Positions 10,956-44,200 of a stretch of 64,000 nucleotides of DNA are shown piece after piece. The notes beneath the pieces are model-generated. The model saw only the letters and a program-made list of their open reading frames with translations, was not told the DNA's origin and did no database searches. Made by a program: the position numbers and the translations under genes. Each line of letters begins with the position of its first letter. Position 1 is the stretch's first letter. Where the stretch lies: positions 62,001 through 126,000 of IMG/VR virus record IMGVR_UViG_3300033153_013547; one strand, written 5' to 3'.

Positions 10956-11050
10956 AGCAAACAGCGTACATGTTGTTAGCATTTTACATATTTATAGCTT
11001 ATTGATATAGTAGCCTTCGTTACTCTTTCTCTCCCCTATAAGAACGGAGT

Positions 11051-11083
11051 AAAAAAATACCTGCCCCCATTACAGGGGCAGGT
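11051..11083 (-). terminator. rho-independent terminator
   Basis: ACCTGCCCCT-GTAAT-GGGGGCAGGT then T7 on minus strand, just after the 11092 stop. Confidence 0.8.
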
Positions 11084-11091
11084 TGGGATGG

Positions 11092-11445
11092 TTACTGTGT
11101 GATGACACGAGTTTCTTGGACTGTGTTGGCTTCGCAGGCTTTACGAAGCCTTTCCCCATCGTTCTGGGAAATGGTCTCGATCAACTTTGCCACTTTGGTA
11201 GCGGTCTTTTTGTCGACTGGAATCCACTTTCCGTTGTCGGGGCGACGAATTCGGATATCGAATCCGTCAGGACTTACAGTAACCATGATGCTGGTTTTGG
11301 AATCATTGGAATTGAGGAAGAAAAACCAGTTAACCTCCTTGTTCCCTGTCAAGCGGATGCCCCCGCTGTTGGCATTGAAATCTCCGACGGGGAACAACCC
11401 CTTTGGGCTGTTGTCGATGATTTCCACGTTTTTAAAGTAGCTCAT
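11092..11445 (-). CDS. hypothetical protein (start revised to MSYFKNV)
   Basis: AGGAG SD before ATG 11445; terminator follows. Confidence 0.7.
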   Translation of the reverse strand: MSYFKNVEIIDNSPKGLFPVGDFNANSGGIRLTGNKEVNWFFFLNSNDSKTSIMVTVSPDGFDIRIRRPDNGKWIPVDKKTATKVAKLIETISQNDGERLRKACEANTVQETRVITQ

Positions 11446-11476
11446 AACGCACACTCCTAAAAGTTTGTTTGTCACG

Positions 11477-11744
11477 CACATCCCGTGACATAGTCTTCAG
11501 GACGAACTGCGGCTTGGCCTAGCCCCGAGCGTTAGCGAGCCCAGGAGAAGAAATGGGAGAGGTCTGACTACCATTAAAATATAAAACATGTCAGACCTGA
11601 AGGGTTCCTATTTCTTCGGATGGGTGTAGGGCTAGGCCAAGGGAGAGCAGTTTGTCACAATGTATGTCACGGATGTGAGATCGTCTAAAGTTGCGCTAGT
11701 CTCCTTTCTTTTCAAATAAATAAGTGGCTAGCGCAACTTTAGAC
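11477..11744 (+). other. ~200-nt imperfect rod plus a 62-nt hairpin; structured ssDNA or ncRNA candidate
   Basis: Five nested stems at 11477-11677 and a 19-bp stem at 11683-11744; mismatches read as G-T on the + strand. Confidence 0.65.
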
Positions 11745-12051
11745 ACCTTATGGATGTCTTTTTGACTTAGAAAAGGCGGTCAGAAATAGAAGAACCTTTC
11801 TCTATCTCCCCCCACCTGGAGAATTGCAAAATTGTCAAAAAGCATCATTGTGTAAACTACAAGCAAGTAATGTGCTACTTATTCTTAGATTGTATCATAT
11901 TGTTCTTAGATTATGCCACATCCTGAACTCAAAGCAAAACAGGGGGCATAGACGTGTTGTATGTGCAGAAGGCGATGGTCTGCCGAAGGCAACACAATGT
12001 AATATTATCTATTAAAGTTGCCCTCAGCAGACCCATCAACATCAATCCAAG

Positions 12052-12222
12052 CTAATCACTTGGGAAAATGGGATACCGTGGATCATCCAGATCCTGGGGG
12101 GGGTCTTCCACTTCATAATGTGGACACCCATCACAATCTGGGCCTACGATATCCGTCAAGCCACACACCGACTCGTTGTCGGATAGGCTAAACCACAGAT
12201 GGACACAGGCCTCTTTTTCCAT
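12052..12222 (-). CDS. 56-aa acidic Cys-containing mini-protein, not in ORF track; last cassette of array
   Basis: AAGGAGG SD supplied by repeat R1; MEKEACVHLW...DDPRYPIFPSD. Confidence 0.7.
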   Translation of the reverse strand: MEKEACVHLWFSLSDNESVCGLTDIVGPDCDGCPHYEVEDPPQDLDDPRYPIFPSD

Positions 12223-12227
12223 CTCTT

Positions 12228-12307
12228 TCCTCCTTCAAGAAAGAATCACTATGCATTCATCATGGCACAATGTAGCTTCATGGCCACCAGCTACTCGGCC
12301 AAGCAGT
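12228..12307 (-). repeat. array repeat R1 (pseudoknot + P3 hairpin + SD)
   Basis: GGCCGAGTAGCTGGTGGCCATGAAGCTACATTGTGCCATGATGAATGCATAG...AAGGAGG. Confidence 0.9.
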
Positions 12308-12631
12308 TTAGTCACGAGGATCTATAACCCCTTCGATTTCATAGTCATCAACCTCTTCGATTTCACGGTCATTATTATAATCATACGAAACTTCATCGAT
12401 CCCCACCCTGAAGAGTGGGGATCCTCCACCACACGCGTCGAGGAACGCCATCTTTACCTGATGGGGATTTTGCCAATCATCATCAGGTTCGATGATCTTA
12501 ACCCCCCGTGTACTTGCAACAATACGGCCACCGATCTCATCAATGGCAAGAAACGCAGGCTTGCCATCATCGGTAACCGACATGAATGCCCCATATGTTA
12601 AATTGAAGTAGTTGTTAAAAAACAGATTCAT
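12308..12631 (-). CDS. acidic hypothetical protein ending DPRD
   Basis: 107 aa, between R2 and R1. Confidence 0.75.
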   Translation of the reverse strand: MNLFFNNYFNLTYGAFMSVTDDGKPAFLAIDEIGGRIVASTRGVKIIEPDDDWQNPHQVKMAFLDACGGGSPLFRVGIDEVSYDYNNDREIEEVDDYEIEGVIDPRD

Positions 12632-12731
12632 CTCTTCCTCCTTAGAAAGAAATCATCACACTTTCGTAGTGATCAAGTGATCGGATGATCACACGTAGCT
12701 TCATGGCCACCAGCTACTCGGCCACACAGCT
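12632..12731 (-). repeat. array repeat R2 (pseudoknot + alternative GTGATC hairpins + SD)
   Basis: Near-identical to R9; shares the pseudoknot with R1/R5/R7/R8. Confidence 0.9.
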
Positions 12732-12887
12732 TTAGTCACGAGGATCCAGATCCAACTCAGGATCCAGATCCAAGACATCAACATCAACCCCCCATCTGCA
12801 ATCTTGTTGATAAACAAGATCGCACTCTTCTCCCTCGGAAAGGAGGCAAGTTATGCCATCCTTCCCTAGGTATTTGCATTTTTTCAT
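12732..12887 (-). CDS. 51-aa acidic Cys-rich mini-protein ending DPRD (start revised)
   Basis: MKKCKYLGKDG...LDLDPRD; the longer ORF-track start reads through repeat R3. Confidence 0.7.
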   Translation of the reverse strand: MKKCKYLGKDGITCLLSEGEECDLVYQQDCRWGVDVDVLDLDPELDLDPRD

Positions 12888-12984
12888 TTTTCTTCTCCCT
12901 TGCCCCAAAGCACAACTCTTTGGGGCAAATCGCCATGCATTCATCATGGCACAATGCAGCCACAGTGCTAACGGCTGCTCAGCT
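12888..12984 (-). repeat. array repeat R3 (pseudoknot + P3 + P4 + SD)
   Basis: GCTGAGCAGCCGTTAGCACTGTGGCTGCATTGTGCCATGATGAATGCATGGCGATTTGCCCCAAAGAGTTGTGCTTTGGGGC. Confidence 0.9.
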
Positions 12985-12990
12985 AAAATG

Positions 12991-13956
12991 TTAAACAGGC
13001 ACAATCGAGTCGCTTCCTGCCTGCAACCTGCGCCTGTTTCCCAACACGATCCCCTCTTTCGTGTTGGCGTAGCAGTAACTGCAAAGGTGTGGGCAGGTGT
13101 TATATTGCCCGATGTCTTTGCTGGCAGCGCATCCGCAGATGCGCCGCTGCCCTGAATCTTTCAGTCCGGCTGGAGTGCCGAAAAGTTTCAGCAGTGCCGG
13201 ATCATTATTTGAGATTCGGAGCAACAGCTCGTCATCGATACATTTGTTTGGCTCGATGCTTGGTTGCTGAAGATCGAGCGGCTCGGCGCAAGTCGCCAAT
13301 TTTAGCCCCCATTGCTGATTCAATCTTACCAAACCTGAAGCTGTCTCACGCATTAAAAATGGTGTGAAATCGAGCCATTTGACGCCCTTTGCCTTTAGGT
13401 TGTTTCGGACTTTACCATAAGCGTCCATATAACTGAAAACCAACTTTTCCGTATATGGATGCAATTGGTCGCCCACTCGTTTAACCTTTTCGAGAAGTCG
13501 CTCAACATTGAGCTCTTCTGTTAAGATTAGAGGATCGAAACGCCAAATCACTCTATGCTTGCCAAGACGGTTGGACAACTCTTGGAATGATTGAATGCGC
13601 GACTCCAGAGGCGGCACATTCGGTTCCAACGCGCCGCCATGGTCTGCGACATAGTCGTTGACCGTGAACTGGAAATAGTAGGCGACGCCTACTTGATCCA
13701 GCTTTTTAAGGTGTTTCATCAAGGGTTTTGGATTCTTACTCCAAAAAACGATGGCGCGCATACGCTCAAAGGAAACAAACTGGGATTTCCCATTAAAAGG
13801 ATTAACCCAGCGTGAATAGCCTTCTTCGAGTCGTCGCATAAACCAATCAGAATAAAAGGCTGGAATATCGGTAGATCGACTAGCCGATATAACTTCCGGC
13901 GCCACAGCCGTATGCACTCCACTGGATGTGGAGATTTCAGTTCTTTTCCACCTCAT
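12991..13956 (-). CDS. DUF1848 family protein (radical-SAM-like, C-terminal Cys cluster)
   Basis: ISASRSTDIPAFYSDWF, FWSKNP, WRFDP, CGCAASKDIGQYNTCPHLCSYCYAN. Confidence 0.88.
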   Translation of the reverse strand: MRWKRTEISTSSGVHTAVAPEVISASRSTDIPAFYSDWFMRRLEEGYSRWVNPFNGKSQFVSFERMRAIVFWSKNPKPLMKHLKKLDQVGVAYYFQFTVNDYVADHGGALEPNVPPLESRIQSFQELSNRLGKHRVIWRFDPLILTEELNVERLLEKVKRVGDQLHPYTEKLVFSYMDAYGKVRNNLKAKGVKWLDFTPFLMRETASGLVRLNQQWGLKLATCAEPLDLQQPSIEPNKCIDDELLLRISNNDPALLKLFGTPAGLKDSGQRRICGCAASKDIGQYNTCPHLCSYCYANTKEGIVLGNRRRLQAGSDSIVPV

Positions 13957-14050
13957 CTACTCTCCCTACCCCAAAGCACAACTCTTTGGGGCAAATCGCC
14001 ATGCATTCATCATGGCACAATGCAACTTCATTGCTATCAGTTGCTCAGCT
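13957..14050 (-). repeat. array repeat R4
   Basis: Same architecture; S2 stem variant GCAACT/AGTTGC. Confidence 0.9.
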
Positions 14051-14057
14051 AATTAAT

Positions 14058-14582
14058 TCACCAATTCTGTTGAACAAACGCCACAATGGCGTCAAAGGTG
14101 TTTAGATCAACATCTTTGACGCCATTGTTGCCAATGATGGTCAACGGAATCCCCAGGCCAAGGGCAATCCTTATCCCCTGGCCTGTACCACCAAGGCCCC
14201 GTTTGTTAGACGGAGCAGCAATTACAGAATCACAACCAAAAATGATTCTGTAATTCCTTCCGTGCAACTTCCTTGCCCCCATAGACAAATATCCTGGGGC
14301 AGGATGATATTTGTCAACGGAAGCAAAGGCCGCCTGGTCGCTCATGGACAAAACATGAACGACCTTGCAAAGGCCCTGGATTTGAGAATTGTACGACGGC
14401 CACGGCACATGACCTTCAGTACTTATTCCCAAATTTCTGGCATGCTCGATGGCAACTTTGTCAATACCATCAGCGCAGCCAGAGACAACTACAGACCCTT
14501 TATCAAGAGATTCTACAATCTCTCTGACAATGCGGATCTGGGGACCAGAGGGGTCTCTGGTCCCTATCACAGCAATCTTCAT
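14058..14582 (-). CDS. SLOG superfamily (DprA/Smf-like) nucleotide-binding protein
   Basis: IAVIGTR, VVSGCADGID, GGTGQGIRIALGLGIP. Confidence 0.75.
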   Translation of the reverse strand: MKIAVIGTRDPSGPQIRIVREIVESLDKGSVVVSGCADGIDKVAIEHARNLGISTEGHVPWPSYNSQIQGLCKVVHVLSMSDQAAFASVDKYHPAPGYLSMGARKLHGRNYRIIFGCDSVIAAPSNKRGLGGTGQGIRIALGLGIPLTIIGNNGVKDVDLNTFDAIVAFVQQNW

Positions 14583-14666
14583 TCCTTTTCTCCTTCAAAA
14601 AAGAATCGCCATGCATTCATCATGGCACAATGTAGCTTCATGGCCATCAGCTACTCGGCCAGGCAG
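14583..14666 (-). repeat. array repeat R5 (no P4)
   Basis: Close match to R1. Confidence 0.9.
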
Positions 14667-14673
14667 ACAATTG

Positions 14674-14934
14674 TTAATGAACAATCACTCCATCTTTCAC
14701 CCTTCTTAGGGCAAAGATGAAGTCATCGCCTTGCATATAGACGATGACCTTTACATCCGAGGTGTCGAAACACTCTATACTGGTCTCGACAAATTTTAAG
14801 GGATCGTTAAGGTACGCATCAGCGTCATTAACATCCAGCACCCATGTGCCGGTTATCGGGAGCCTAAACGCCTCCCGAATGATAACATGTGATCCCGGAC
14901 TTGCCGGGATCGTGGGGTATATAATTCTCCTCAT
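14674..14934 (-). CDS. hypothetical protein (start revised to MRRIIYP)
   Basis: AAGGAG SD of R6. Confidence 0.65.
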   Translation of the reverse strand: MRRIIYPTIPASPGSHVIIREAFRLPITGTWVLDVNDADAYLNDPLKFVETSIECFDTSDVKVIVYMQGDDFIFALRRVKDGVIVH

Positions 14935-14940
14935 CCCCAT

Positions 14941-15032
14941 CTCCTTTGCCCCAAAGCACAACTCTTTGGGGTAAAATCGCCATGTATTCATCATGGCACA
15001 ATGTAGCCTTATGACTATCGGCTGCTCAGTCA
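14941..15032 (-). repeat. array repeat R6
   Basis: S1 variant GACTG/TAGTC. Confidence 0.9.
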
Positions 15033-15039
15033 AGAGAAC

Positions 15040-15423
15040 TTAGGCAGAATCTCTGATCTTCATCAGGATCCTGCCCAGATGGTTCAGTCCAACTCCGTTG
15101 CTTACGCCCCAGAATTGGTCTCCCCACCAATTCTCTTCAACGATCTCCCCCTTTATGGCCTGAAGTTTGGCCATAAAGACAGGATCGCTGAACTTTTTAC
15201 TTACCAGATCCTCCATGATCTGGAGTTTGACCTGATCCCAGTCAGGCCTAAGCCTAACTGTTTTGCCAATCTTTTTGGCAATAAACCCGTTGGTCACACC
15301 AACGAATCTTGCCTGATCAGCAGGATCAGTACACTTTGCCTTCTGGTACTCCACCTCCACACAGTACCCTAACGAATTAGGACACATGTTGGACAGAAAC
15401 CAGAAGATGCCCCTGAATCTCAT
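15040..15423 (-). CDS. NADAR (YbiA-like) ADP-ribose/N-glycosidase
   Basis: FLSN, VEYQKAK, RPDWDQVKLQIM, KF, IVEENWWGDQFWG, GLNHLGRILMKIR; AAGGAGG SD. Confidence 0.9.
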   Translation of the reverse strand: MRFRGIFWFLSNMCPNSLGYCVEVEYQKAKCTDPADQARFVGVTNGFIAKKIGKTVRLRPDWDQVKLQIMEDLVSKKFSDPVFMAKLQAIKGEIVEENWWGDQFWGVSNGVGLNHLGRILMKIRDSA

Positions 15424-15433
15424 AATCACCTCC

Positions 15434-15847
15434 TTAGTGATATATCTCAACATTCAGATCAAGATCAGCCAGTTTATCAGACATCATCTGCCTAACCACT
15501 GGCCAATCCAGACCTCCAAGGCCACATCCAAGCCTGGGGAAGGCTATGGACCTAAAACTCCAGGTTTGGGTGGCAAAATCATCAAGACCATCAGAGATAT
15601 ACTCCAATTTGCTTGGATCTCTCCAATGATCCTTGGTGGGGAACAGTAGAACATTCTCCACCAAGATGACCTTGCCAGGCCTTAGAATGCCTGCAGAGCA
15701 TAGCCTGGCATACTCTGCAAACACCATGGGAAACCTTGCTTTGAACTCCAAGGCAAGACCCTTGCCCATCACGCCAACACAGTTGACGGGATTGACAAGA
15801 ACCTCACATTTGGAATCAAACAGATCCCCCCGCAGCAACAACAACAT
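15434..15847 (-). CDS. macrodomain ADP-ribosylhydrolase (DarG/Poa1/TARG1-like class)
   Basis: GDLF, VNPVNCVGVMGKGLALEFK, FPTKDHW, SIAFPRLGCGLGGLDW. Confidence 0.9.
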   Translation of the reverse strand: MLLLLRGDLFDSKCEVLVNPVNCVGVMGKGLALEFKARFPMVFAEYARLCSAGILRPGKVILVENVLLFPTKDHWRDPSKLEYISDGLDDFATQTWSFRSIAFPRLGCGLGGLDWPVVRQMMSDKLADLDLNVEIYH

Positions 15848-15951
15848 CTCCTCCTCCTTTACCCCAAAGCACAACTCTTTGGGGTAAAATCGCCATGTAT
15901 TCATCATGGCACAATGTAGCTTCATGGCCACCAGCTACTCGGCCAAGCAGT
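15848..15951 (-). repeat. array repeat R7
   Basis: GGCCG-type pseudoknot + P3 + P4. Confidence 0.9.
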
Positions 15952-16155
15952 TTAATCACGAGGATATCTGATGACATCATTCATGGTATCATGGTCAATA
16001 TCAGCAGATATCGTCTTGATTGCTTCCAACTTGATGAAAGCGCACAGAAGTCCCCGCACTTCTTCGATTTCATCAAATAAAATCTTGCTCCGATGAAAGA
16101 GCAAGACTATCGTCACCACAAGGGCGGCGATAATAATCGACATTAATAACAACAT
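15952..16155 (-). CDS. 67-aa membrane-anchored protein ending YPRD (start revised)
   Basis: MLLLMSIIIAALVVTIVLLF hydrophobic N-term; SD from R8. Confidence 0.7.
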   Translation of the reverse strand: MLLLMSIIIAALVVTIVLLFHRSKILFDEIEEVRGLLCAFIKLEAIKTISADIDHDTMNDVIRYPRD

Positions 16156-16258
16156 CTCCTCCTCCTTTACCCCAAAGCACAACTCTTTGGAGCAAAATCG
16201 CCATGTATTCATCATGGCACAATGCAGCTTCATGGCCACCAGCTACTCGGCCAAGCAG
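16156..16258 (-). repeat. array repeat R8
   Basis: Near-identical to R7. Confidence 0.9.
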
Positions 16259-16561
16259 TTACTTCTTCTGCTTTTCAACCCATTCCTTTATCACGTCTCC
16301 GTGACAAGGGCTGGGTTTGCAAAAGCAGACAAGGGTCTTCCCATCAAGTTCAAGCACCCTCCTCTTGAACTCGGGGTCAGACCCCAATCTGCTCAGGAAG
16401 TACTCCCTATACTTAGGTAGGGAGCTACCCCCTGAGCCGGGGAATGGATTCCCAAAATATCCATCCATTCCCCTACCAGCCCTTCCTATGTAAACATAGG
16501 AAGGGTCATCGCGCCACCCCTTAGGGGCGTCGCGAATATTAATAACGTTGATAGGCAACAA
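16259..16561 (-). CDS. DUF4326 family protein
   Basis: YVYIGR...FGNPF...LDGKTLVCFCKPSPCHGDVI; AAGGAGG SD favours TTG at 16561 (ORF track start 16594). Confidence 0.85.
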   Translation of the reverse strand: MLPINVINIRDAPKGWRDDPSYVYIGRAGRGMDGYFGNPFPGSGGSSLPKYREYFLSRLGSDPEFKRRVLELDGKTLVCFCKPSPCHGDVIKEWVEKQKK

Positions 16562-16629
16562 AATCACCTCCTTTTGTTGCCGGTCAATCGACACGGTTTC
16601 GGCAGACCACGTGTCATTCTGCAGACAAA

Positions 16630-17070
16630 TTACATGAAATCTCCCACAATCAGGTCACCCTTCTTGTGGGAGATTTTCTTCCCCCTTGGTCGGGGCGCAG
16701 GCACCTTCTTGGCGGGCACCTTCTTGGCAGGTGCCTTAACCTCTCTGGGCCACTTGCAATAATGCTTGACTGGCCCAGAGGCAGGCCGCTCTGCTGTTGC
16801 TGCCACCACTTCCACAGCAACAGCCTTTTTCACAGTAGGCCCAACCACATCATGGATGAGCCTACTGCAACACAGCTGCTTCCTGAGACGAAGTATTGCC
16901 TCGCCTCCGTCCACGCCTGTGGGGATCGTGCCCCTCCAACCGGGAACACGTTCCCCGTTGAGGTAGGCTTCACAGTACTGAAGCCCACCCCTTTCAAACA
17001 GGGGGGAGAATTTAATCTTTACCCTCTTCCCCCCCAACAAAATGTCAGGGGGACGAATCAAATTAGGCAC
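16630..17070 (-). CDS. hypothetical protein with basic PAKK tail
   Basis: AAGGAG SD, GTG start; KAPAKKVPAKKVPAP repeat. Confidence 0.65.
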   Translation of the reverse strand: MPNLIRPPDILLGGKRVKIKFSPLFERGGLQYCEAYLNGERVPGWRGTIPTGVDGGEAILRLRKQLCCSRLIHDVVGPTVKKAVAVEVVAATAERPASGPVKHYCKWPREVKAPAKKVPAKKVPAPRPRGKKISHKKGDLIVGDFM

Positions 17071-17143
17071 AGTAACACACTCCTTTCTGCCAGGTATATC
17101 CTGGATCAGATGAGCAGTTTATTGTCTTGCTCAGGACACAATG

Positions 17144-17464
17144 TTATAAACCAAGTTCCTCCCTGACACGATCCCTATTGACGGGATAAATGTTTATCTC
17201 ATCTATCCCATCAATAGAAACCCTGAACAATTGCCAGGGGCCCCCATCTGCTGGGATGAACCAGTATAGAGGATTATACCCCTTGGCTTCCTCAAACTCC
17301 TTCGCTGCTCTTCCGAACAGCGAATTCTTCCGGGGATTTTGTTGCCAAACTTCTCCCCAAATCTGCCCTATTGGCTTGGCAGATTTGAGCATCACCCCAG
17401 AAATGGTGGCTCTTGGTGCGGAGCAGACCGCCTTACGCACCAAGGCAATAATTTTCTCTTCCAT
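17144..17464 (-). CDS. hypothetical protein
   Basis: SD from R9. Confidence 0.75.
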   Translation of the reverse strand: MEEKIIALVRKAVCSAPRATISGVMLKSAKPIGQIWGEVWQQNPRKNSLFGRAAKEFEEAKGYNPLYWFIPADGGPWQLFRVSIDGIDEINIYPVNRDRVREELGL

Positions 17465-17562
17465 TTTTCCTCCTTAGAAAGAAATCATCACACTTTCGTA
17501 GTGATCAAGTGATCGGATGATCACGCGTAGCTTCATGGCCATCAGCTACTCGGCCATACAGT
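17465..17562 (-). repeat. array repeat R9 (R2 type)
   Basis: Near-identical to 12632-12731. Confidence 0.9.
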
Positions 17563-17645
17563 TTAGTCACGAGGGTCCAGAATGTCACCATGGCTTGTTG
17601 TCAGCCAGAAATGGCTTTCAACCCATAGACCAATGCCCCAACTGA

Positions 17646-18611
17646 CTAAATTCCCCGTGCCCAGAGAGCGTTCCGGCGCGCTTCTTTTTCGGCGCGCGCC
17701 TTTTCAACTCGTTCGCGAAGCTCCGGGGGAACATAGCCCGGCGTGTCGGGCGGTTCCGTAGCAGACACCGTAAATGTCTGCAGGAAAACGCTCGCGTACT
17801 CTTCCACCTGTTCGAGGGACAGCTCGACCCCCGAACGCAGCTCTTTGGGCAACTGGTAATCCAGATCAACTTCCACCACTCTCTCGGCGTGAACCGCGAT
17901 GTGTGGCGGGAGGCTGCCTTGCGTGGTATAAACGTCCTTCCCCATCACGTCATCCACTGCGGCATTCTCCACGACTGGCGTTCCCTTTGTCACCAGTCCT
18001 ATTTTCTCCAGATACGTCACGAACGCCGGATGGCGCGTGACGATGATGTTCCCATTTTCCATGGGAACAATATCCGACGCCCTGAGCAAATCTGACGCGA
18101 TGAAAGAGTACGCCTTGAGCTCACCGCTCGCGTACTCTTCCACCTGTTCAAGGGTCAGTTCGACCCCAGAACGCAGTTCATCGGGTAAATCGAGCGTGAG
18201 CTCGATTAACTTTTCTGAATACACCGCCAAGTGCAGGGGAATATACCCCTGCGTGGTGTAAACAGACCTTAAGGGACCGAGAGGTATCCCCGTCATGTCA
18301 TGACGGCTCCGCACATTCTTGAGCCACGTCACACGCCGTGCGCTGCCGAATGTGTGGATCTTCGCAAAATAACGCGCCACTGCGAGGTGGCGCGAAACGA
18401 CAAGATCTTTCGGCGGATAAATCTCCACTAGTCGGACAACGCGCGACTCGCCCTCCTCCAGGTAATTCCCGTAGGAATCCTGGACGGAACCCGAGGCTAT
18501 CGTCGTTCGATAGCCGTGCTCGATATCTATGGGGCCGCACCGGCGACCCTTGAAGTCCCTGATTTTCTCAAGCCTAGCCTCATTCCAGGCTTGAAACTCC
18601 TTCTCATTCAT
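17646..18611 (-). CDS. tandem two-domain Csx16-like (Cas_VVA1548) putative ring nuclease
   Basis: Two repeats of VV(S/T)RH...G(Y/S)(I/L)PxH(L/I)A...LPxELRSGVEL(T/S)LEQVEEYA. Confidence 0.7.
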   Translation of the reverse strand: MNEKEFQAWNEARLEKIRDFKGRRCGPIDIEHGYRTTIASGSVQDSYGNYLEEGESRVVRLVEIYPPKDLVVSRHLAVARYFAKIHTFGSARRVTWLKNVRSRHDMTGIPLGPLRSVYTTQGYIPLHLAVYSEKLIELTLDLPDELRSGVELTLEQVEEYASGELKAYSFIASDLLRASDIVPMENGNIIVTRHPAFVTYLEKIGLVTKGTPVVENAAVDDVMGKDVYTTQGSLPPHIAVHAERVVEVDLDYQLPKELRSGVELSLEQVEEYASVFLQTFTVSATEPPDTPGYVPPELRERVEKARAEKEARRNALWARGI

Positions 18612-18668
18612 ATCAATCTCTCCTTGCCCTGCACTAGCCGCGGCAGGGCTTCGCGGTTGTGTGTTACC

Positions 18669-18953
18669 CTATGCAAACTGCACGATGTACGCCACGGGCG
18701 TGCTGGCGTATTCGCGCACTTGCTCAAGGGTCAGCTCGACCCCCCTCATCTCCGCCGGAATATCCAGCGGAACTTCGATCACTCGCCGCGCATGCACGGC
18801 GAGCCGAAGAGGAAGAACGCCGAAAACGTTCTTCCCCATTACATCGTCGACCGTGGCATGTGCCACGATGGGCGTGCCTTCCGGCACTAACCCTATCTCG
18901 ATCAAATACGTCACCAATGCTGGGTGACGCGTAACAACAATACTTTTATTCAT
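18669..18953 (-). CDS. csx16: Csx16-like (Cas_VVA1548) putative cOA ring nuclease, 94 aa (start revised)
   Basis: IVVTRHPA...GVLPLRLA...LDIPAEMRGVELTLEQV fits the Csx16 pattern hhsRHpgA...GtLPxhLA...LdlPxexRGxELs. Confidence 0.75.
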   Translation of the reverse strand: MNKSIVVTRHPALVTYLIEIGLVPEGTPIVAHATVDDVMGKNVFGVLPLRLAVHARRVIEVPLDIPAEMRGVELTLEQVREYASTPVAYIVQFA

Positions 18954-19048
18954 CTCTTCTCCTTTACCCCAAAGCACAACTCTTTGGGGCAAATCGCCAT
19001 GTATTCATCATGGCACAATGCAGCCACAGTGCTGTCGGCTACTCAGCT
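18954..19048 (-). repeat. array repeat R10
   Basis: Same architecture as R3. Confidence 0.9.
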
Positions 19049-19086
19049 GTGGGGGGCGATCCTGTTTCGATGTTGACAGGATCCAT

Positions 19087-19117
19087 AAAAAAAGAGAGAG
19101 GCCCGAAGGCCCCTCTC
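19087..19117 (-). terminator. rho-independent terminator (copy 1)
   Basis: GAGAGGGGCC-TTCG-GGCCTCTCTC + T7. Confidence 0.85.
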
Positions 19118-19120
19118 CGA

Positions 19121-19210
19121 TGATGCCTATATTTCTCCTTTCCCGGCATCAGGGAGTTTCACCACTATGCAGGTGACGCATACATTTTGTTTATCCAGAT
19201 GTAAACTGGA
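19121..19210 (-). ncRNA. candidate structured RNA, three tandem H-type pseudoknots (copy 1)
   Basis: TCCAG/CTGGA + TACAT/ATGTA; TGC/GCA + TCACC/GGTGA; TCCC/GGGA + TGATGCC/GGCATCA; covaries with copy 2. Confidence 0.55.
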
Positions 19211-19234
19211 ATCCGGTTTTGAAAGGGGAGGGGG

Positions 19235-19690
19235 TTACTCTATTATTGGGAGGACATCCCCTTCTTCAAAGTCATACTGCCACGGATCATAATCCGTGGC
19301 AAGACCAATTGCTGTGACCATGTCTTTTGCGACGATCACAGCAAACCCCTGAAATTCCTCGCCCCCATCGTAGGGGACGAGGAACCCCCCGGGTTCCTTT
19401 TCTTCCGGACACTCCGGAAGGTTGGGGGCAAGTTTTCTTGCCCCCAACTGAAGGGTCCTCCAGACGGAGGTTTTTACTCCGTCTAGAAACCCTGACTCCC
19501 CACGTAAAATGGGGTAAAACACGCTAGTCGCTGCAGCGGCCAGCGTGCTCGCTCCTCCGGCTCTCATGAGCCGGAAGTACGAAATATTGCCGCTAACAGC
19601 AACTGGGCACCACGTCCTGTGGAGGGGCAGACACTGCCCATACCCCTCCACAGGGCGTAAAAAGACCGATAGCCAAAAAATTTTAGCCAT
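19235..19690 (-). CDS. hypothetical protein, paralog of 19972..20442 (start revised)
   Basis: MAKIFWLSV...FRLMRAGGA...LVPYDGGE. Confidence 0.75.
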   Translation of the reverse strand: MAKIFWLSVFLRPVEGYGQCLPLHRTWCPVAVSGNISYFRLMRAGGASTLAAAATSVFYPILRGESGFLDGVKTSVWRTLQLGARKLAPNLPECPEEKEPGGFLVPYDGGEEFQGFAVIVAKDMVTAIGLATDYDPWQYDFEEGDVLPIIE

Positions 19691-19696
19691 TCCCAT

Positions 19697-19787
19697 CTCC
19701 CTTACCCCAAAGCACAACTCTTTGGGGTAAAATCGCCATGTATTCATCATGGCACAATGCAACCACAGTGCTAACGGCTGCTCAGCT
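19697..19787 (-). repeat. array repeat R11
   Basis: Same architecture as R3. Confidence 0.9.
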
Positions 19788-19825
19788 GTGGGGGGCGATC
19801 CTGTCTCGATGTTGACAGGATCCAT

Positions 19826-19857
19826 AAAAAAAAGAGAGAGGCCCGAAGGCCTCTCTC
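19826..19857 (-). terminator. rho-independent terminator (copy 2)
   Basis: GAGAGAGGCC-TTCG-GGCCTCTCTC + T8. Confidence 0.85.
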
Positions 19858-19860
19858 CGG

Positions 19861-19952
19861 TGATACCTATATTTCTCCTTTCCCGGTATCAGGGAGTTTC
19901 ACCACTATGCAGGTGACGCATACATTTTGTTTATCCAGATGTAAAAACTGGA
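19861..19952 (-). ncRNA. candidate structured RNA, three tandem pseudoknots (copy 2)
   Basis: TGATACC/GGTATCA compensatory change; a 2-nt insertion falls in a loop. Confidence 0.55.
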
Positions 19953-19971
19953 ATCCGATTTTGAAAAGGGG

Positions 19972-20442
19972 TTACCCTATTATCGGGATAATATCCCGAT
20001 AATCCGTAGCAAAGTCGTCTCGCCACAGATCGTAATCTATGGCGAGATCAATCGCCGTGGTCGCATTTTTTGCGACTACGACGACAAACCCCTCGAATTC
20101 GCCCCCATCGTAGGGGACGAGCACTTTGCAGAATACCCCGGAACGTTCCGGGATATCGGGGGCAAGCAAAGCTACCCCCACCTGCATTGTTCTCCGGACA
20201 AATGTTACCCACTTGTCTAGAGAATTTACCTCGCTCAAGAGCCAATCCGCATTTGTTAAAATGGGATAAAATATACTAGCCACTATAGCGGTTAGTATAT
20301 CCGCTCCTCCGGCTCTCATGAGCCGGAAGTGCGAAACGCCGTCGCTTTCAGCGACGACGTTCCATGACTCATTATCGGGGGGGTTTTCTTTAAACCCCTC
20401 GATCTTGTCGAGTAAAACTGACAGCCAAAAGATCTTGGCCAT
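19972..20442 (-). CDS. hypothetical protein, paralog of 19235..19690 (start revised)
   Basis: Shared motifs; SD from R12. Confidence 0.75.
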   Translation of the reverse strand: MAKIFWLSVLLDKIEGFKENPPDNESWNVVAESDGVSHFRLMRAGGADILTAIVASIFYPILTNADWLLSEVNSLDKWVTFVRRTMQVGVALLAPDIPERSGVFCKVLVPYDGGEFEGFVVVVAKNATTAIDLAIDYDLWRDDFATDYRDIIPIIG

Positions 20443-20537
20443 CTCCTCCTCCTTTGCCCCAAAGCACAACTCTTTGGGGCAAATCGCCATGTATTCATCA
20501 TGGCACAATGCAACTTCATTGCTATCAGTTGCTCAGC
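20443..20537 (-). repeat. array repeat R12
   Basis: R4-type pseudoknot + P3 + P4 + AAGGAGGAGG. Confidence 0.9.
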
Positions 20538-20628
20538 GTCATATCGCAGATTTCCTAACCGGTGTCTGCCAACCGGCCACAGCCAAAATAGTGACTGTGG
20601 CCACCGCCTACGTTGCGGAGGCGGTGGT

Positions 20629-20835
20629 TTAAAACCCCCGAGCCTCAAGGTCGAGGCATATGTCTTCGTATGCCTCGACCTTGAGCTCGTCAGCAAGGGA
20701 ATCTAAATAACTCCCTTGCTGAACGTTGAGGCGTTCTACCTTGCGGCAGAACGCCTCAACAAGCTCAAGGCGACGATAAGGATTCTTGCAATCCTTAATC
20801 GCCTCCTTGAGCTTAAACAACTCAAGAAATCTCAT
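20629..20835 (-). CDS. 68-aa hypothetical protein, first gene of array (start revised)
   Basis: AAGGAGG SD before MRFLELF. Confidence 0.7.
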   Translation of the reverse strand: MRFLELFKLKEAIKDCKNPYRRLELVEAFCRKVERLNVQQGSYLDSLADELKVEAYEDICLDLEARGF

Positions 20836-21342
20836 AAACACCTCCTTCAACGACATAGGGCATCTATTTATACCCCTCTTTGGCCCTATCACAGAATTGT
20901 GTCCATCTTCGACCAGATGGAAGAATTACTCCCTTAGGCCATATAGTTTGGGGGTGGGCATCATCTGATAACTCCACCCCTAAACTATCATTCTGGTCAG
21001 CCCCCCAAAATTCATCACAGAATTGCCTTATAAACAGACAAAAAAATTGCCTCATGAACAAACAACATTCTTCATAGCTAGCTAGATAAAAACTAACTTT
21101 CAGTCAGTCTTCCAAAATTCACAAATTTACTCCTTCATTGAATGATCCATATACTATAAAAACTTTTTCTCAAACAACTTCTCAAAAAATATATGCAGTA
21201 ATAATTCCCATGTAAGGGCTAAAATAAAATCTCTCTCTGGCCTCCAAAATAAAATAATTATTATCTAATAAGGTAGTATAGATGGGTAGATGGGTAGATA
21301 TCCTGCCTTATTTACTAAAATAGGATTTACTTTTAATTAATT

Positions 21343-21696
21343 ATGCCACAAACACGTGAAGAACGTATTTCTAACTATGCTGATGTGTCTGTAAGAGTAG
21401 CTGTGAAATACCACATAGATGAAGAGTTGTTGGACTTAGATAGTAATAATAAATATGACCAGAGGTATATGGAAGGGCAGATGTGCTACAAGGAACAAGA
21501 ACTGTTTTTTGAATATAAAATAGAACAGGCTGCCAGGAAAACACTCTGTAAGCTATTTATACAGACTTTAACTGAAATAAAACGTATTATGTATGACTCT
21601 ACTGATCACAGGACTTTTGAATACCTGCAGACAATGAAGGATGTTGCAGAAAAACACCCTATAATAGCAGAATATTTAGAGAGCCATGAATCTTAG
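21343..21696 (+). CDS. hypothetical protein
   Basis: First gene after the strand switch. Confidence 0.7.
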   Translation: MPQTREERISNYADVSVRVAVKYHIDEELLDLDSNNKYDQRYMEGQMCYKEQELFFEYKIEQAARKTLCKLFIQTLTEIKRIMYDSTDHRTFEYLQTMKDVAEKHPIIAEYLESHES

Positions 21697-41224: not shown

Positions 41225-44200
41225 GTGTATGAACCAGAGAAAACCAAACCTTTCAGATTATCTGAAAGGTTTTTAGAAAAATATAAAAATACCAAACCAC
41301 CCTTTGGTTTCAATGGACTTGGAGAATTTATTTACCGAAGGACCTACTCGCGAATCAAGCCATCAGATGGAACCAATGAAGAATGGTGGGAGACTATACA
41401 GCGTGTTGTAGAAGGCACGTATAATATGCAAAAGAGACATGTGGAATTTTATACACTGAAATGGAATGCTCATCAAGCCCAATATAGTGCCCAAGAAATG
41501 TATGACAGAATGTTCCACATGAAGTTTCTTCCAAGTGGGAGGGGTCTTTGGGCCATGGGCAGCCCCATCATTGAAGAACGAGGAATGCATATGGCTCTGT
41601 CTTCATGTGCCATGATAAGCACTGCAAATATCAAAGATGATCCAGCCAAGCCATTCTGTTTCTTGATGGATGTATCAATGCTTGGGGTTGGATCAGGTTT
41701 TTCTACAGATGGCGCTGGCAAAATTACAATCAAAGGGCCAAGTGATACCAGAAAACCAGAAGTTTTCATTATACCAGATACCAGAGAAGGATGGGTTGAA
41801 TCAGTAAAATTACTGTTAGAATCATATTTCTTTGGGACAGGCAAAATAGAATTTGATTATACAAAGATACGACAAATTGGTGAACCAATACGAGGATTTG
41901 GGGGCGTCAGTTCTGGTTACAAACCACTGGAAAAATTACACCAAACACTTAGGCAAATATTGGATAAAGAAATAGACAACCCCATTAGCGTAACCACCAT
42001 CGTAGATATTATGAATTTGATTGGCCAGTGTGTAGTATCTGGCAATGTCAGAAGATGTTTGCCACAAGGCACTCTTGTTCACACCAAAAAAGGGCTTCTA
42101 AAAATAGAGGATCTCAAAGCCGGGATGATGGCCAAAACATCTACTGGCTATGATAAAATAACAGAAGTTGTGTATCAGGGGAAGCAAAACACAATAACAA
42201 TACAGACAATTATTGGCGACTTAAAATGTACCCCCAAACACAGAGTAGCAAAACTTACATCTCCTACAGAATATACTTGGGTATATGCAAAAGATCTAAA
42301 AGAAAATGATTTACTGGTTTTTGTTGCTTCTGAAACAGATGGCATAAAAACCAAATTACCAGACTGGACTTACGAGAAACCCAAACATTCTACTACATGT
42401 AAAGACATAACCATTCCAGATCTCGATCATGATATGGCTTGGTTTTTCGGCTTATTACATGGTGACGGGTATGTGGCCCCTAACTTTGATAAAAACGGAT
42501 TCAATGCGCACATTTCTGTCGCATGCGCCCCAGATAATAACGAGATTGTACTCAGATGTAGAGAGCAGATCAAGAGATTTGGCGTAAATATCAATATTGT
42601 ACCACCAAAAATAGGCGATAGATCCACCAAAATTAGATCACAATCTAAGCAATTGGCATGGTATCTATCACAATTCAAGATGCCAAGAGAACCTATTGTA
42701 ATCCCTGATTTTATAATGAATGGTAAAACAGATTTGCGGGCGGCATACTTGGCTGGACTTTTAGATGCTGATGGTTGTGTAAAAAGCAGTCCAATAATTC
42801 TTGTAACAACAATATATGAGCACTTTCTTTACCAAGTCCAATCATTATATGCCAGCCTTGGTATACCAACCAGAATTAGATATTTCAAATCTATGAATGG
42901 ATGGAAACCCAAATATGCTCTGCATTTGGTTGGCAAATACCCCAAGGCAAGGTTTATGGAAATTGTGGCCCCACATTCGTCTAAGCAAACACAAATAAAT
43001 TACACAAGAGGATCGCAAAATGACTATGGCTATCCCATGTCTTGGGCAAACAACAAAATGAGAAGGACAGCGGGATATTATGCTAAACAAATTACTCAGT
43101 TCACCTATCAACGGTTATCTGGCAATTTTACAAATATCACACCAATCAGGGTAAATAATGTTGTATTTACTAACAAAAAATCAGAGACGTGGGATATCTC
43201 TGTAGAATCCCAACACGAATTTGTTATAGATAGGGGCTTATTGGTCCACAACACAGCTCTGATCACCTTTGGAGATCCAGAATCACAAGAATATGTTGAT
43301 CTCAAAAACCCCAAAGTCAATCCAGAAAGATGTGGAGATAATGGGTGGGCATGGACATCTAATAACTCTGTTTGCGCAAGACTTGGAATGGATTATTCTA
43401 AGGTGTCTAAAAGAACGGTCGCCAATGGTGAGCCAGGTTACATATGGTTAGATAATGCTCGTGGTTACTCAAGAATGAACAATGGCCCAGACAATAAAGA
43501 TCATAGGGTTGTAGGCACAAACCCGTGTTCGGAACAATTTTTGGAATCATATGAACTTTGCTGTTTAGTAGAGGCCTTTCCTTGTAATAATGAATCCAAA
43601 GAAGATTTTCTAAGAACACTCAAATATGCATATCTGTATGCCAAAACCGTAACCCTTGGCCAAACACATTGGCCAGAAACAAATGGGGTTATGCTTCGTA
43701 ATAGAAGAATAGGAACATCATTGAGTGGTATCCAACAATTTATTGCCAAACACAACATAGACATTCTAAAAGAATGGTGCGAAGACGGGTACAACGAAAT
43801 CAAGCGCTGGGACCGCGTATATTCCGATTGGCTTGGCATACCAAGATCCATAAAAATCTCAACAGTAAAACCGAGTGGCTCAATTTCATTACTTGCTGGC
43901 GCAACAGCTGGCATTCACTTCCCAGAGGGCAGATATTTTGTCAAACGAGTACGCATAGCCAAAAACAGTCCGCTAATCGCCCCCTTGAGAAAGGCTGGTT
44001 ACCCAATAGAAGATGACGTAAACAATGAATATGCATTTGTTGTTGAGTTCCCTGTAGATGTTGGTAAAAACGTAAGAAGCGTCAAAAATGTTTCTGCTTG
44101 GGAAAAAACGTCGATGGCAGCATTCATGCAGCACTATTGGTCGGACAATGCCGTATCAACAACAGTAGATTTTGATCCAGAAACAGAGGGAGACCAAATA

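Follow-up and report, generated by a model that had tools for sequence, protein, structure and literature searches.

Organization of the gene array

The DNA analyzed is a 64,000-nucleotide window (positions 62,001 to 126,000 of IMG/VR record IMGVR_UViG_3300033153_013547) of a 261-kb jumbo phage, and all coordinates below are those of the window. At 12052-20835 it contains an array of 17 small, captured anti-defence genes (G1-G17) on the minus strand, with a GC content of 47-53% compared with about 38% in the flanks, and each gene is preceded by a strong AAGGAGG-type Shine-Dalgarno (SD) ribosome-binding site. The gene families found include Csx16-like (one gene plus a three-domain gene), DUF4326, a DarG-like macro protein (E = 3e-52), NADAR, ShosA/DprA-like, and DUF1848, and G14 is 91% identical in nucleotides to a bacterial gene. 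Twelve junctions carry copies of a shared repeat of about 100 nt, and three spacers lack it. A sequence-only reading had proposed that spacers lacking the repeat carry unrelated sequences folding into the same pseudoknot (PK) topology, giving four sites as examples, and had noted the 10-nt macro-NADAR junction as the exception. The relevant features are as follows:

18626-18656 (-), PK1, in the repeat-less G4/G5 spacer: CCGCG-AA-GCCCTGC--CGCGG-CTAGT-GCAGGGC (S1 CCGCG/CGCGG, L1 AA, S2 GCCCTGC/GCAGGGC, L2 0, L3 CTAGT), starting +12 nt after the TAG stop and directly abutting the AAGGAG of the SD.
17111-17138 (-), PK2, in the repeat-less G6/G7 spacer: TGTC-C-TGAGCA-A-GACA-ATAAAC-TGCTCA, starting +5 nt after the TAA stop and followed by the hairpin CCAGG-ATATA-CCTGG and the SD.
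16590-16622 (-), PK4a, in the repeat-less G7/G8 spacer: GCAGA-AT-GACACG-TGG-TCTGC-CGAAAC-CGTGTC, starting +7 nt after the TAA stop, with S1/L1/S2/L2 of 5/2/6/3, the same as the PK of the repeat.
16578-16615 (-), PK4b, the version first proposed at this site: the same GACACG/CGTGTC helix, crossed on the 3' side by TGCCG/CGGCA.
20546-20576 (-), PK3, in the G1/G2 spacer: CCGGT-TG-GCAGA-C-ACCGG-TTAGGAAA-TCTGC, +52 nt after the stop and upstream of a repeat copy.
15916-15945 (-), repeat 5' module, type A: TGGCC-GA-GTAGCT-GGT-GGCCA-TGA-AGCTAC, with same-type copies at 17527-17556, 16224-16253, 14632-14661, 12695-12724 and 12272-12301.
15003-15032 (-), repeat 5' module, type B3: TGACT-GA-GCAGCC-GAT-AGTCA-TAA-GGCTAC, with S1 fully re-coded relative to type A (G-C to A-U and C-G to U-A).
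14022-14051 (-), repeat 5' module, type B2: S2 GCAACT/AGTTGC and S1 core GCT/AGC, with the second B2 copy at 20510-20539.
12956-12985 (-), repeat 5' module, type B1: S2 GCAGCC/GGCTGC and S1 core GCT/AGC, with further copies at 19759-19788 and 19020-19049.
19181-19210 (-), AT-rich PK-like element in the G3/G4 spacer: TCCAG-TT-TACAT--CTGGA-TAAACAAA-ATGTA, duplicated in G2/G3 at 19921-19952, and followed by a second crossing pair and a strong intrinsic terminator.
15424-15433 (-), the 10-nt macro/NADAR junction: no structure, with the SD overlapping the stop codon.
20601-20627 (-), a 9-bp hairpin directly after the G1 stop.

Crossing helices at the gene junctions

The original observation is confirmed: all four sets of complementary segments (PK1, PK2, PK3 and PK4b) are present on the minus strand, and the macro-NADAR junction is the only one without a PK. 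Three corrections are required, however. First, PK3 is not in a repeat-less spacer, as the G1/G2 spacer also holds a repeat copy whose PK module is at 20510-20539. Second, at 16.6 kb the crossing helix GCAGA/TCTGC (PK4a) fits the common geometry better than the TGCCG/CGGCA helix of PK4b, with which it competes; the TGCCG arm overlaps the TCTGC arm by 3 nt and the two cannot both form fully. Third, the property is not confined to the spacers (see below). The PKs share one geometry, with S1 of 4-5 bp, L1 of 1-2 nt, S2 of 5-7 bp and L3 of 5-8 nt, and this is sterically sensible only on the sense (minus) strand. L3 is A-rich in the unique spacer PKs (18/33, by hand count), compared with 6/33 in the PK-like motifs inside genes.

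The first 30 nt of the repeat is itself an H-type PK, which was not part of the sequence-only reading and provides the strongest support. It starts 5-12 nt after the upstream stop codon in 8 of the 12 copies, the same offset as in the three repeat-less spacers, and both helices show compensatory changes across the 12 copies. Of the cells in the repeat PK 93% are paired, compared with 23-59% for slid controls, five pairs show double changes (two in S1 and three in S2), and none of 500 shuffles reaches the covariation score. The repeat PK also contains G-U pairs. No locus related to the array was found in the collections searched and a sibling contig is 100% identical, such that all of the evidence comes from one phage genome and the unique PKs have no covariation support of their own. 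A low-coverage variant contig carries a deletion of T20619 plus A20609G in the hairpin following G1, a compensatory variant that turns the closing U-A pair into C-G.

Energies estimated with standard PK penalties are equal to or better than the best nested fold of the same segment for PK1 (about -18 kcal/mol as a PK against -14.5 nested), PK2 (-5.9 against -5.6), PK3, PK4a and repeat type A (-10.8 against -7.5), although the PK energy model is crude. PK2 is the weakest case, with an S1 of 4 bp and an energy about that of the plain hairpin, and the S1 5' arm of PK3 overlaps the base of a competing 11-bp hairpin predicted in the MFE fold. The type B repeat copies have only a 3-bp S1 core, and their PK is estimated to be slightly less stable than the nested fold.

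Comparison with shuffled and non-array sequences

Whether shuffled or non-array spacers of equal GC would yield such pseudoknots equally often had been set as a test of the proposal; the observed PKs exceed chance. At least one perfect Watson-Crick H-type PK of 10 bp or more occurs in 0.5-4% of dinucleotide shuffles of each spacer, and one as stable as that observed occurs in 0-1.9% (0/2000 for PK1). With the stronger hairpin (S2) held fixed, a crossing helix of the observed length with L1 of 2 nt or less has P = 0.003 for PK1, 0.032 for PK2, 0.007 for PK4a and 0.009 for PK3. Using a descriptor taken from the repeat PK (S1 of 4 bp or more, L1 of 1-2 nt, S2 of 5 bp or more, L2 of 0-3 nt, L3 of 3-8 nt, and a total of 10 bp or more), although with the L3 range and 10-bp threshold chosen after seeing the data, there are 15 loci on the sense strand of the array against 0.74 +/- 0.86 in shuffles, and 6 on the antisense strand. 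A PK of this kind starts at +5 to +12 from an anchor with a frequency of 0.0076 within array coding sequence, 0.0024 outside the array, 0.0003-0.0011 in spacer shuffles, and at 0 of 62 stop codons of ORFs outside the array, whereas it is seen in 3 of 3 repeat-less spacers.

The array as a whole is unusually rich in predicted RNA structure. Every coding sequence in it is over-structured relative to codon shuffles (z = -3 to -24), compared with about -0.2 to -2 for 11 of 12 control genes in the same phage, and there are 113 helices of 7 bp or more against 22 expected. G14 has gained structure relative to its bacterial homologue. PK-like motifs are about 10-fold enriched within array genes (5 loci against 0.54 in codon shuffles), and general hairpin richness thus raises the base rate, although PK density is 5.2/kb in spacers against 0.73/kb in coding sequence.

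Relationship to known elements

Classical H-type pseudoknots in mRNA leaders and recoding signals (the T4 gene 32 operator, the rpsO/S15 operator, and luteovirus and retrovirus frameshift or readthrough PKs) likewise have two crossing helices of 4-7 bp, an L1 of 1-2 nt spanning an S2 of 5-7 bp, a longer and often A-rich L3, and a location next to an SD or 5-12 nt downstream of the decoded codon. Here the PK recurs at about 15 junctions of one array with unrelated sequences, there is no slippery site, general in-frame extension or known binding protein, and no Rfam family matches. The PeSL (promoter-early stem-loop) cassettes of T4-like phages (PMC2839356, PMC4122927) are also short conserved intergenic modules flanking variable accessory genes in a hyperplastic region of a large phage, plausibly serving as sites of homologous exchange, and the unit shared here even includes the last four codons (DPRD) and the stop codon. 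A PeSL is a terminator stem-loop plus a sigma-70-type early promoter, however, whereas the module here is a PK, two hairpins and an SD in which no promoter consensus was found, and junctions without the module still carry a PK. Intercistronic stabilizer and processing hairpins (T7 RNase III sites, REP elements, and 5' stem-loop stabilizers next to strong SDs) are similarly stable structures between cistrons of polycistronic phage or bacterial mRNAs, some abutting the SD, but are simple or bulged hairpins with family-specific sequence, in contrast to the pseudoknot topology and convergent geometry in unrelated sequences seen here. Integron attC sites are cassette-boundary elements just after stop codons with conserved structure and free sequence, associated with arrays of captured small genes, but they are nested imperfect palindromes that act as single-stranded DNA, with conserved R'/R'' cores and a nearby integrase, none of which is seen here. 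Exoribonuclease-resistant RNAs (xrRNA) and the genome-scale ordered RNA structure (GORS) of RNA viruses share PK-based folds, which there stop exonucleases, and pervasive excess folding energy throughout coding sequence, but are known in eukaryotic RNA viruses rather than in a DNA phage operon, and no sequence or covariance-model similarity was found.

Alternative explanations

The leading alternative, although we consider it unlikely, is that the pseudoknots are a by-product of an array selected, or mutationally driven, to be hairpin-rich everywhere, each being a real hairpin plus a coincidental or mutually exclusive second helix with no PK-specific role. The over-structured coding sequences, the excess of long helices, the PK-like motifs inside genes, the 4-bp S1 of PK2, and the nested alternatives for PK3 and PK4 are all in its favor. 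However, even with the array's own coding sequence as the null, 3 of 3 stop-proximal PKs has P of about 4e-7 (0.0076 cubed), the crossing helix is improbable given the hairpin, L1 is 1-2 nt in all cases, S1 of the repeat PK covaries, PK density is higher in the spacers, and L3 is A-rich only in the spacer PKs.

Less likely is that each PK, alone or with the two conserved hairpins of the repeat, is recognized by a structure-specific endoribonuclease that cuts the polycistronic RNA into monocistronic units, as with T7 RNase III sites, Cas6/Csy4 hairpins or tRNA punctuation. There is one PK per cistron boundary and none inside the macro-NADAR pair, sequence-independent conservation of shape is what such a nuclease would require, and the strong terminators after G2 and G3 show that the array is not one simple transcript. 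But no nuclease candidate was identified in the window, no Rfam family matches (self-cleaving ribozymes included), and searches for RNA data that would show processed ends returned none.

It is also doubtful that the PKs are translational devices, in which a PK at the mRNA channel entrance of a terminating ribosome would modulate termination, promoting re-initiation or coupling to the next SD, or stop-codon readthrough. The 5-12 nt spacing equals that of frameshift and readthrough stimulators, the G4 TAG is in frame with the G5 ATG through a stop-free 19-codon spacer containing PK1 (G4 and G5 carry the same Csx16-like domain), and the start codons of G2 and G3 sit inside hairpins. Nonetheless, the G6/G7 and G7/G8 spacers are 73 and 68 nt and those junctions are out of frame, no slippery heptamers precede the stop codons, in-frame stops follow within about 10 codons in the repeat junctions, and PK-stimulated readthrough is not established in bacteria.

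Finally, DNA-level boundary sites folded as single strands for capture by a recombinase, in the manner of attC, are very unlikely, for although the array looks like captured cassettes (G14 in particular) with structure-conserved, sequence-variable elements directly after stop codons, the topology is crossing rather than the nested R''-L''/L'-R' imperfect palindrome, no GTTRRRY core is present, no integrase was found among the proteins scanned from the window, and the G-U pairs and L1/L3 asymmetry point to sense-strand RNA.

Interpretation

We favor, with moderate confidence, the view that these are cis-acting H-type RNA pseudoknots on the predicted minus-strand transcript, one at nearly every cistron boundary, twelve as the first 30 nt of the repeat and three as sequence-unrelated PKs of the same geometry. 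The analysis establishes that the complementarities exist and are far beyond chance, that their geometry is consistent and feasible only on the sense strand (L1 of 1-2 nt is shorter than L3 of 3-8 nt in every case, and the mirror-image PK on the other strand would be sterically impossible), that the repeat PK has compensatory changes in both helices, and that the PKs start 5-12 nt after the stop codon in 8 repeat junctions and in all 3 repeat-less junctions. That selection acts on shape rather than sequence is inferred from these findings, as are the transcript itself and any function. The proposal of a 'pseudoknot-punctuated' transcript in which the structure itself is selected is thus partly supported, in that the pattern fits selection on shape, but the pseudoknots are not a special property of the spacers alone and the processing that punctuation implies has no RNA data behind it.

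With the ribosomal helicase site near +11 from the P site, an offset of 5 nt or more after the stop would be the closest position at which a structure need not be unwound by a terminating ribosome. We suggest that the PKs are probably mRNA stabilizers or insulators, acting as compact structural caps between cistrons that would block exonucleases, leave little single-stranded RNA for endonucleases, and keep each SD in a defined folding context. In this view they would be one part of an array-wide drive towards a maximally base-paired, RNase-hardened mRNA.

The gene array and its junctions

The window is part of the 261-kb phage contig IMGVR_UViG_3300033153_013547, and the one DNA run that holds the sequence is labelled a hydrothermal-vent metagenome. 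Between 20835 and 12052 on the minus strand lie 17 small genes (G1 to G17), each with a strong AAGGAGG-type Shine-Dalgarno (SD) sequence, in a region of 47-53% GC as against about 38% in the flanks. The recognizable products are all of the counter-defence or antitoxin kind, namely a Csx16-like protein and a three-domain Csx16-like protein (G4, G5), DUF4326 (G8), a DarG-like macro domain (G10; E = 3e-52), NADAR (G11), a ShosA/DprA-like protein (G13) and DUF1848 (G14). Elsewhere the window carries PhoH, a class II ribonucleotide reductase and other phage-type genes, with intein or Hint domains inside the ribonucleotide reductase gene (with a LAGLIDADG endonuclease) and inside a 965-aa ORF (41225-44446 and 53323-56220), and a tract of degenerate tandem repeats with a 12/20-nt period (GATGAATCAATGGAT-like units) at 1951-2157. 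No tRNA or tmRNA genes were found.

Of the 16 gene junctions, 12 carry a repeat of about 100 nt, of which eight copies are full length, two lack the last hairpin and two have a different 3' half. Three junctions (G4/G5, G6/G7 and G7/G8) have no repeat, and the macro-NADAR junction is only 10 nt long. Three unrelated genes (G16, G15 and G9) and a gene fossil in the G5/G6 spacer all end with the same codons (D/Y-P-R-D, then stop, then ACTGCT; 12308-12322, 12732-12746, 15952-15966 and 17565-17580). The repeat unit therefore begins inside the upstream ORF, which suggests cassette exchange by homologous recombination.

After G2 and after G3 (19828-19971 and 19088-19234) lies a tandem duplication of about 740 nt, which holds a structured element of about 140 nt with two overlapping pseudoknot-like pairs and an SD-like loop, and which ends in a strong intrinsic terminator (GGAGAGAGGCC-UUCG-GGCCUCUCUC plus a U run). 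The array is therefore not one simple transcript unless there is antitermination or internal promoters.

Crossing helices in the spacers

The sequence-only reading had listed four sets of crossing complementary segments in the spacers, and all four are present where it placed them. A scan for perfect Watson-Crick H-type pseudoknots (PKs; stems of 4 bp or more, 10 bp or more in total, L1 of 1-6 nt, L2 of 0-4 nt and L3 of 2-10 nt) recovers all four. Dinucleotide shuffles of each spacer contain any such PK in only 0.5-4% of trials, and one as stable as that observed in 0-1.9%, so that the outcome which had been set beforehand as counting against the observation, equally frequent PKs in shuffled spacers, is clearly not seen.

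The two helices occur in the order S1a-S2a-S1b-S2b without overlap of the arms in PK1 (G4/G5 spacer), PK2 (G6/G7), PK3 (G1/G2), the two alternative PKs of the G7/G8 spacer (PK4a and PK4b) and the 5' module of the repeat. The S1/L1/S2/L2/L3 geometries are 5/2/7/0/5, 4/1/6/1/6, 5/2/5/1/8 and 5/2/6/3/6 for PK1, PK2, PK3 and PK4a, and 5/2/6/3/3 for the repeat. These satisfy the Pleij-type steric constraints, in which an L1 of 1-2 nt can span an S2 of 5-7 bp and an L3 of about 3 nt or more can span an S1 of 4-5 bp, although repeat type A, with an L3 of 3 nt, is borderline.

A predicted pseudoknot module within the repeat

The first 30 nt of the repeat read TGGCC-GA-GTAGCT-GGT-GGCCA-TGA-AGCTAC in type A, and three other types of this module occur. 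When the 12 copies are aligned both crossing helices hold, with 93% of cells paired as against 23-59% when the partners are slid. Two pairs of S1 show double compensatory changes (G-C to A-U and C-G to U-A), as do three pairs of S2, and 0 of 500 shuffles reach the covariation score. Some pairs are G-U, which would be A-C mismatches on the other strand. The geometry is an S1 of 5 bp (with a 3-bp core in the B1 and B2 types), an L1 of 2 nt (an invariant GA), an S2 of 6 bp, an L2 of 3 nt and an L3 of 3 nt. In eight copies the module starts 5-12 nt after the upstream stop codon, and in the other four further elements lie in between. This covariation concerns the repeat module only, as no loci homologous to the unique PKs were found.

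The spacers without the repeat

A descriptor was set from the repeat PK, with an S1 of 4 bp or more, an L1 of 1-2 nt, an S2 of 5 bp or more, an L2 of 0-3 nt, an L3 of 3-8 nt and 10 bp or more in total, although the L3 range and the 10-bp threshold were chosen after seeing the data. Each of the three spacers without the repeat has a matching element on the minus strand:

Predicted pseudoknots in the spacers that lack the repeat (coordinates; offset after the stop codon; S1/L1/S2/L2/L3)
PK1, G4/G5 spacer: 18656-18626; +12; 5/2/7/0/5
PK2, G6/G7 spacer: 17138-17111; +5; 4/1/6/1/6
PK4a, G7/G8 spacer: 16622-16590; +7; 5/2/6/3/6

The G7/G8 element uses a helix, GCAGA/TCTGC, that was not listed in the sequence-only reading, and it competes with the TGCCG/CGGCA helix (PK4b) that was.

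The chance that such a PK starts within a given 8-nt window is 0.0076 in the array's own coding sequence, 0.0024 elsewhere in the window and 0.0003-0.0011 in spacer shuffles, and none is present at 62 stop codons of ORFs outside the array. Three of three therefore has a P of about 4e-7 under the harshest of these nulls. With the stronger hairpin held fixed and everything else shuffled, a crossing helix of the observed length with an L1 of 2 nt or less appears with P = 0.003 (PK1), 0.032 (PK2), 0.007 (PK4a) and 0.009 (PK3). Descriptor-type loci number 15 on the sense strand, against 0.74 +/- 0.86 in shuffles, and 6 on the antisense strand, and their density is 5.2/kb in spacers and 0.73/kb in coding sequence.

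In every case L1 (1-2 nt) is shorter than L3 (3-8 nt), and only the sense strand therefore gives a sterically possible PK. The L3 loops of the unique spacer PKs are A-rich (18 of 33 nt) while those of the PK-like motifs inside genes are not (6 of 33), although this is a post hoc count made by hand. A further comparison of strands, by G-U against A-C interruptions in hairpins, gives 11:4 on the sense strand against a composition expectation of 1.37:1, numbers too small to be significant.

Folding energies were estimated from standard Turner stacking values with common PK penalties (9.0 + 0.3/nt or 9.6 + 0.1/nt), and are rough given these crude penalties.

Estimated energies of the pseudoknots and of the best nested fold of the same segment (kcal/mol)
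PK1: about -18 as a PK; -14.5 nested
Repeat type A: -10.8 as a PK; -7.5 nested
PK4a: -8.5 as a PK; -7.6 nested
PK3: -7.9 as a PK; -6.9 nested
PK2: -5.9 as a PK; -5.6 nested

By these estimates the PK is favored for PK1 and repeat type A and marginal for PK2, PK3 and PK4a, whereas the type-B repeat modules are slightly worse as PKs than as nested folds. Within the full spacer, S1 of PK3 overlaps the base of an 11-bp hairpin. PK1 is thus a strong candidate, PK4a a moderate one, and PK2 and PK3 are weaker.

RNA structure across the array

The array as a whole is the unusual object. The same scan finds 40 PK-like loci on the array's sense strand, against 4.2 +/- 2.0 in block shuffles, and 23 of these lie inside genes. 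Folding energies explain why. In 120-nt tiles the array has mean z-scores of about -3 to -6 on both strands, while most of the window beyond 21 kb is near 0. Every array gene folds far better than codon-order or dinucleotide shuffles of itself, with mean tile energies of -35 to -70 kcal/mol against -25 to -37 (z = -3 to -24), whereas eleven of twelve control genes of the same phage lie between -0.2 and -2, the exception being a gene at 61932-62600, far from the array, with z = -5.5 against codon shuffles. Abundant Leu/Glu/Lys codon pairs were considered as a cause of the hairpins, but codon-order shuffles do not reproduce the structure and this was rejected. G3 is essentially a chain of perfect 9-16 bp hairpins with 72% of its nucleotides paired, and helices of 7 bp or more number 113 against 22 expected. 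Counts of adjacent-hairpin loci did not serve as a control for topology, because the loci merge and the count saturates. As such, shuffles and spacers outside the array are not the hardest null for the PKs; the array's own coding sequence is.

Other structured elements in and around the array are as follows:
20640-20688 and about 14083-14128: hairpins of about 20 bp inside the 3' ends of the G1 and G13 coding sequences (16+4 bp with one bulge, and 15+4 bp with one mismatch)
19669-19690 and 20421-20442: the start codons of the paralogues G2 and G3 lie inside a predicted 9-bp hairpin (AUGGCUAAA-AUUU-UUUGGCUAU in G3), which hints at regulated or coupled initiation
20945-20990: a 15-bp hairpin with one A-C mismatch (AUAGUUUAGGGGUGG...CCACCCCCAAACUAU) just upstream of the first gene of the array
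11480-11690 and 11700-11750: an imperfect hairpin of about 190 nt (-89 kcal/mol, z = -7.2) and a 15-bp hairpin downstream of the array, neither of which matches an Rfam family

Four further lines bear on whether structure is selected. First, the paralogues G2 and G3 are about 67% identical in nucleotides, and 76-82% of the predicted pairs of one gene are pairable in the other, against 40-50% for slid controls; where both sides changed, 27 of 46 pairs are kept, against about 38% in controls. One example is the helix AUAUACUA/UAGUAUAU in G2, which reads GCACGCUG/UAGCGUGU in G3. Second, G14 (12991-13956) is 91.3% identical in nucleotides over 780 nt to a gene on a bacterial-type contig (L040, 5832-6920) that also carries LptD-like and NosD-like genes, and is therefore a recent capture, the phage copy having lost about 20 internal codons and the C-terminal tail. 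The bacterial copy is ordinary (z = -1.7) and G14 is not (z = -6.3). The 75 substitutions make G14 more stable than random changes at the same sites (z = -2.7) and also than the same substitution types placed at matched random sites (z = -3.7, 0 of 200), although the direction of change is inferred without an outgroup. Third, the duplicated G2/G3 and G3/G4 spacers differ by a compensatory GAUACC/GGUAUC to GAUGCC/GGCAUC change. Fourth, a low-depth variant contig of the G1/G2 spacer has a deletion of T20619 together with A20609G, which converts the closing U-A pair of a 9-bp hairpin into C-G, a single observation.

Searches for relatives

All of the evidence comes from one genome. A scan of viral, genome and metagenome contigs with the repeat core matched only the source contig, plus 33 chance hits, and the DPRD-stop junction motif matched only itself. 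Among 5.8 billion proteins the G3 family has only itself and its paralogue, the neighboring 404-aa protein matched only itself, the INPHARED phage collection gave no match, and G10 homologues are 57% identical at most. A second contig (L038) is 100% identical. The source vent metagenomes are IMG 3300033153 and 3300033148. A search for sequencing data listed no RNA run, and the one DNA run holds only six short, low-depth contigs.

Comparison with known elements

No Rfam 15 family matches at gathering score anywhere in the window, PK-containing families such as preQ1, SAM-II, fluoride, xrRNA and the small ribozymes included, and a search of 11000-21500 at E of 5 or less returned only far sub-threshold chance hits.

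The PKs have the anatomy of classical H-type PKs such as those in recoding signals and translational operators, and their offsets from the stop codon (+5, +7 and +12 for the unique PKs, and +5 to +12 for eight repeat copies) match the 5-9 nt, and up to about 12 nt, at which stimulatory structures lie downstream of a recoded codon. They fail the other defining features of recoding signals, in that no X XXY YYZ motif precedes the stop codons and, with G6/G7 and G7/G8 spacers of 73 and 68 nt, only G4/G5 is in frame. PK1, PK2, PK3 and PK4 also have no U run, and so do not conform to intrinsic terminators.

The repeat as a whole resembles the PeSL cassettes of T4-like phages in its role, being a conserved intergenic module that flanks swappable accessory genes (PMC2839356, PMC4122927) and is shared, in 12 copies, between otherwise unrelated genes, extending into the last codons (DPRD plus stop) of four different upstream sequences. 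It lacks their terminator stem-loop followed by a sigma-70-type early promoter: no promoter-like site was found in the module, non-sigma-70 promoters not being excluded, and terminator-like hairpins with a U run occur only after G2 and G3, outside the module.

A full-text literature search found no description of a series of sequence-unrelated, geometry-matched PKs after the stop codons of one operon. The elements would be of a known kind, cis-acting intercistronic RNA structure.

Interpretation

The analysis itself establishes that crossing helices of uniform geometry sit at cistron boundaries, that the repeat copy of this element covaries in both helices, that the elements lie close to stop codons, and that only the sense strand allows the fold. 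That these are RNA pseudoknots selected for shape, and what they do, is inferred. An offset of 5 nt or more after the stop is about the closest a structure can sit without being unwound by a terminating ribosome, as the ribosomal helicase site lies near +11 from the P site. In this view the PKs would stay folded under translation and leave almost no single-stranded RNA between the ribosome-covered ORF and the next SD. PK1 abuts its SD, and in the repeat a conserved hairpin abuts the SD in the same way. We therefore favor a role as stabilizer or insulator caps, as part of an array-wide minimization of single-stranded RNA. We consider it more likely than not that these are real, shape-selected PKs, whereas the combined statement including this inferred function is about as likely as not. 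The interpretation in the sequence-only reading, that the structure itself is selected in a 'pseudoknot-punctuated' transcript, is thus supported only in part.

The first of the alternatives is that the PKs are a by-product of the general hairpin richness of the array, within whose genes PK-like loci also occur. A second is that they are endonuclease recognition sites, and thus true punctuation. A third is control of termination, re-initiation or readthrough. The TAG stop of G4 is in frame with the ATG of G5 through a stop-free 19-codon spacer that contains PK1 (18612-18671), and as both genes carry Csx16-like domains readthrough would give a four-domain protein, but the other junctions are out of frame and readthrough is rejected as a general explanation. 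The reading as integron attC-like DNA sites is rejected on topology, which is crossing rather than a nested R''-L''...L'-R' imperfect palindrome. The spacers contain no GTTRRRY core, and no integrase family appeared in Pfam and PHROG scans of 30 window proteins (all array genes, their near neighbors and a sample of the large ORFs), the window being only part of the contig.

A more radical reading is not excluded, although we regard it as unlikely on present evidence. The array would be an 'RNase-hardened' operon, in which freshly captured host anti-defence genes are placed behind a standard structured leader and are then reshaped by selection, coding sequence included, until almost no single-stranded RNA remains, with ribosome-proof pseudoknots sealing each stop-codon-to-SD gap. 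Counter-defence proteins (Csx16-like, DarG-like macro, NADAR and ShosA-like) could then still be made while host single-strand-specific RNases or Rho are active. That would be a new, transcript-level layer of phage counter-defence, and also a natural case of convergent evolution of RNA pseudoknots by shape.

If these are real, shape-selected pseudoknots, they are a rare natural example of unrelated sequences converging on one small RNA fold at equivalent positions in a single operon. That would point to a generic, sequence-independent job at cistron boundaries, as a stabilizer, an insulator or a processing mark, and such parts could be reused as compact elements in synthetic operons. Together with the extreme excess of RNA structure in the coding sequences, and with a recently captured gene that has already drifted towards more structure, they make testable the idea that phages protect the mRNAs of their counter-defence genes by folding them.
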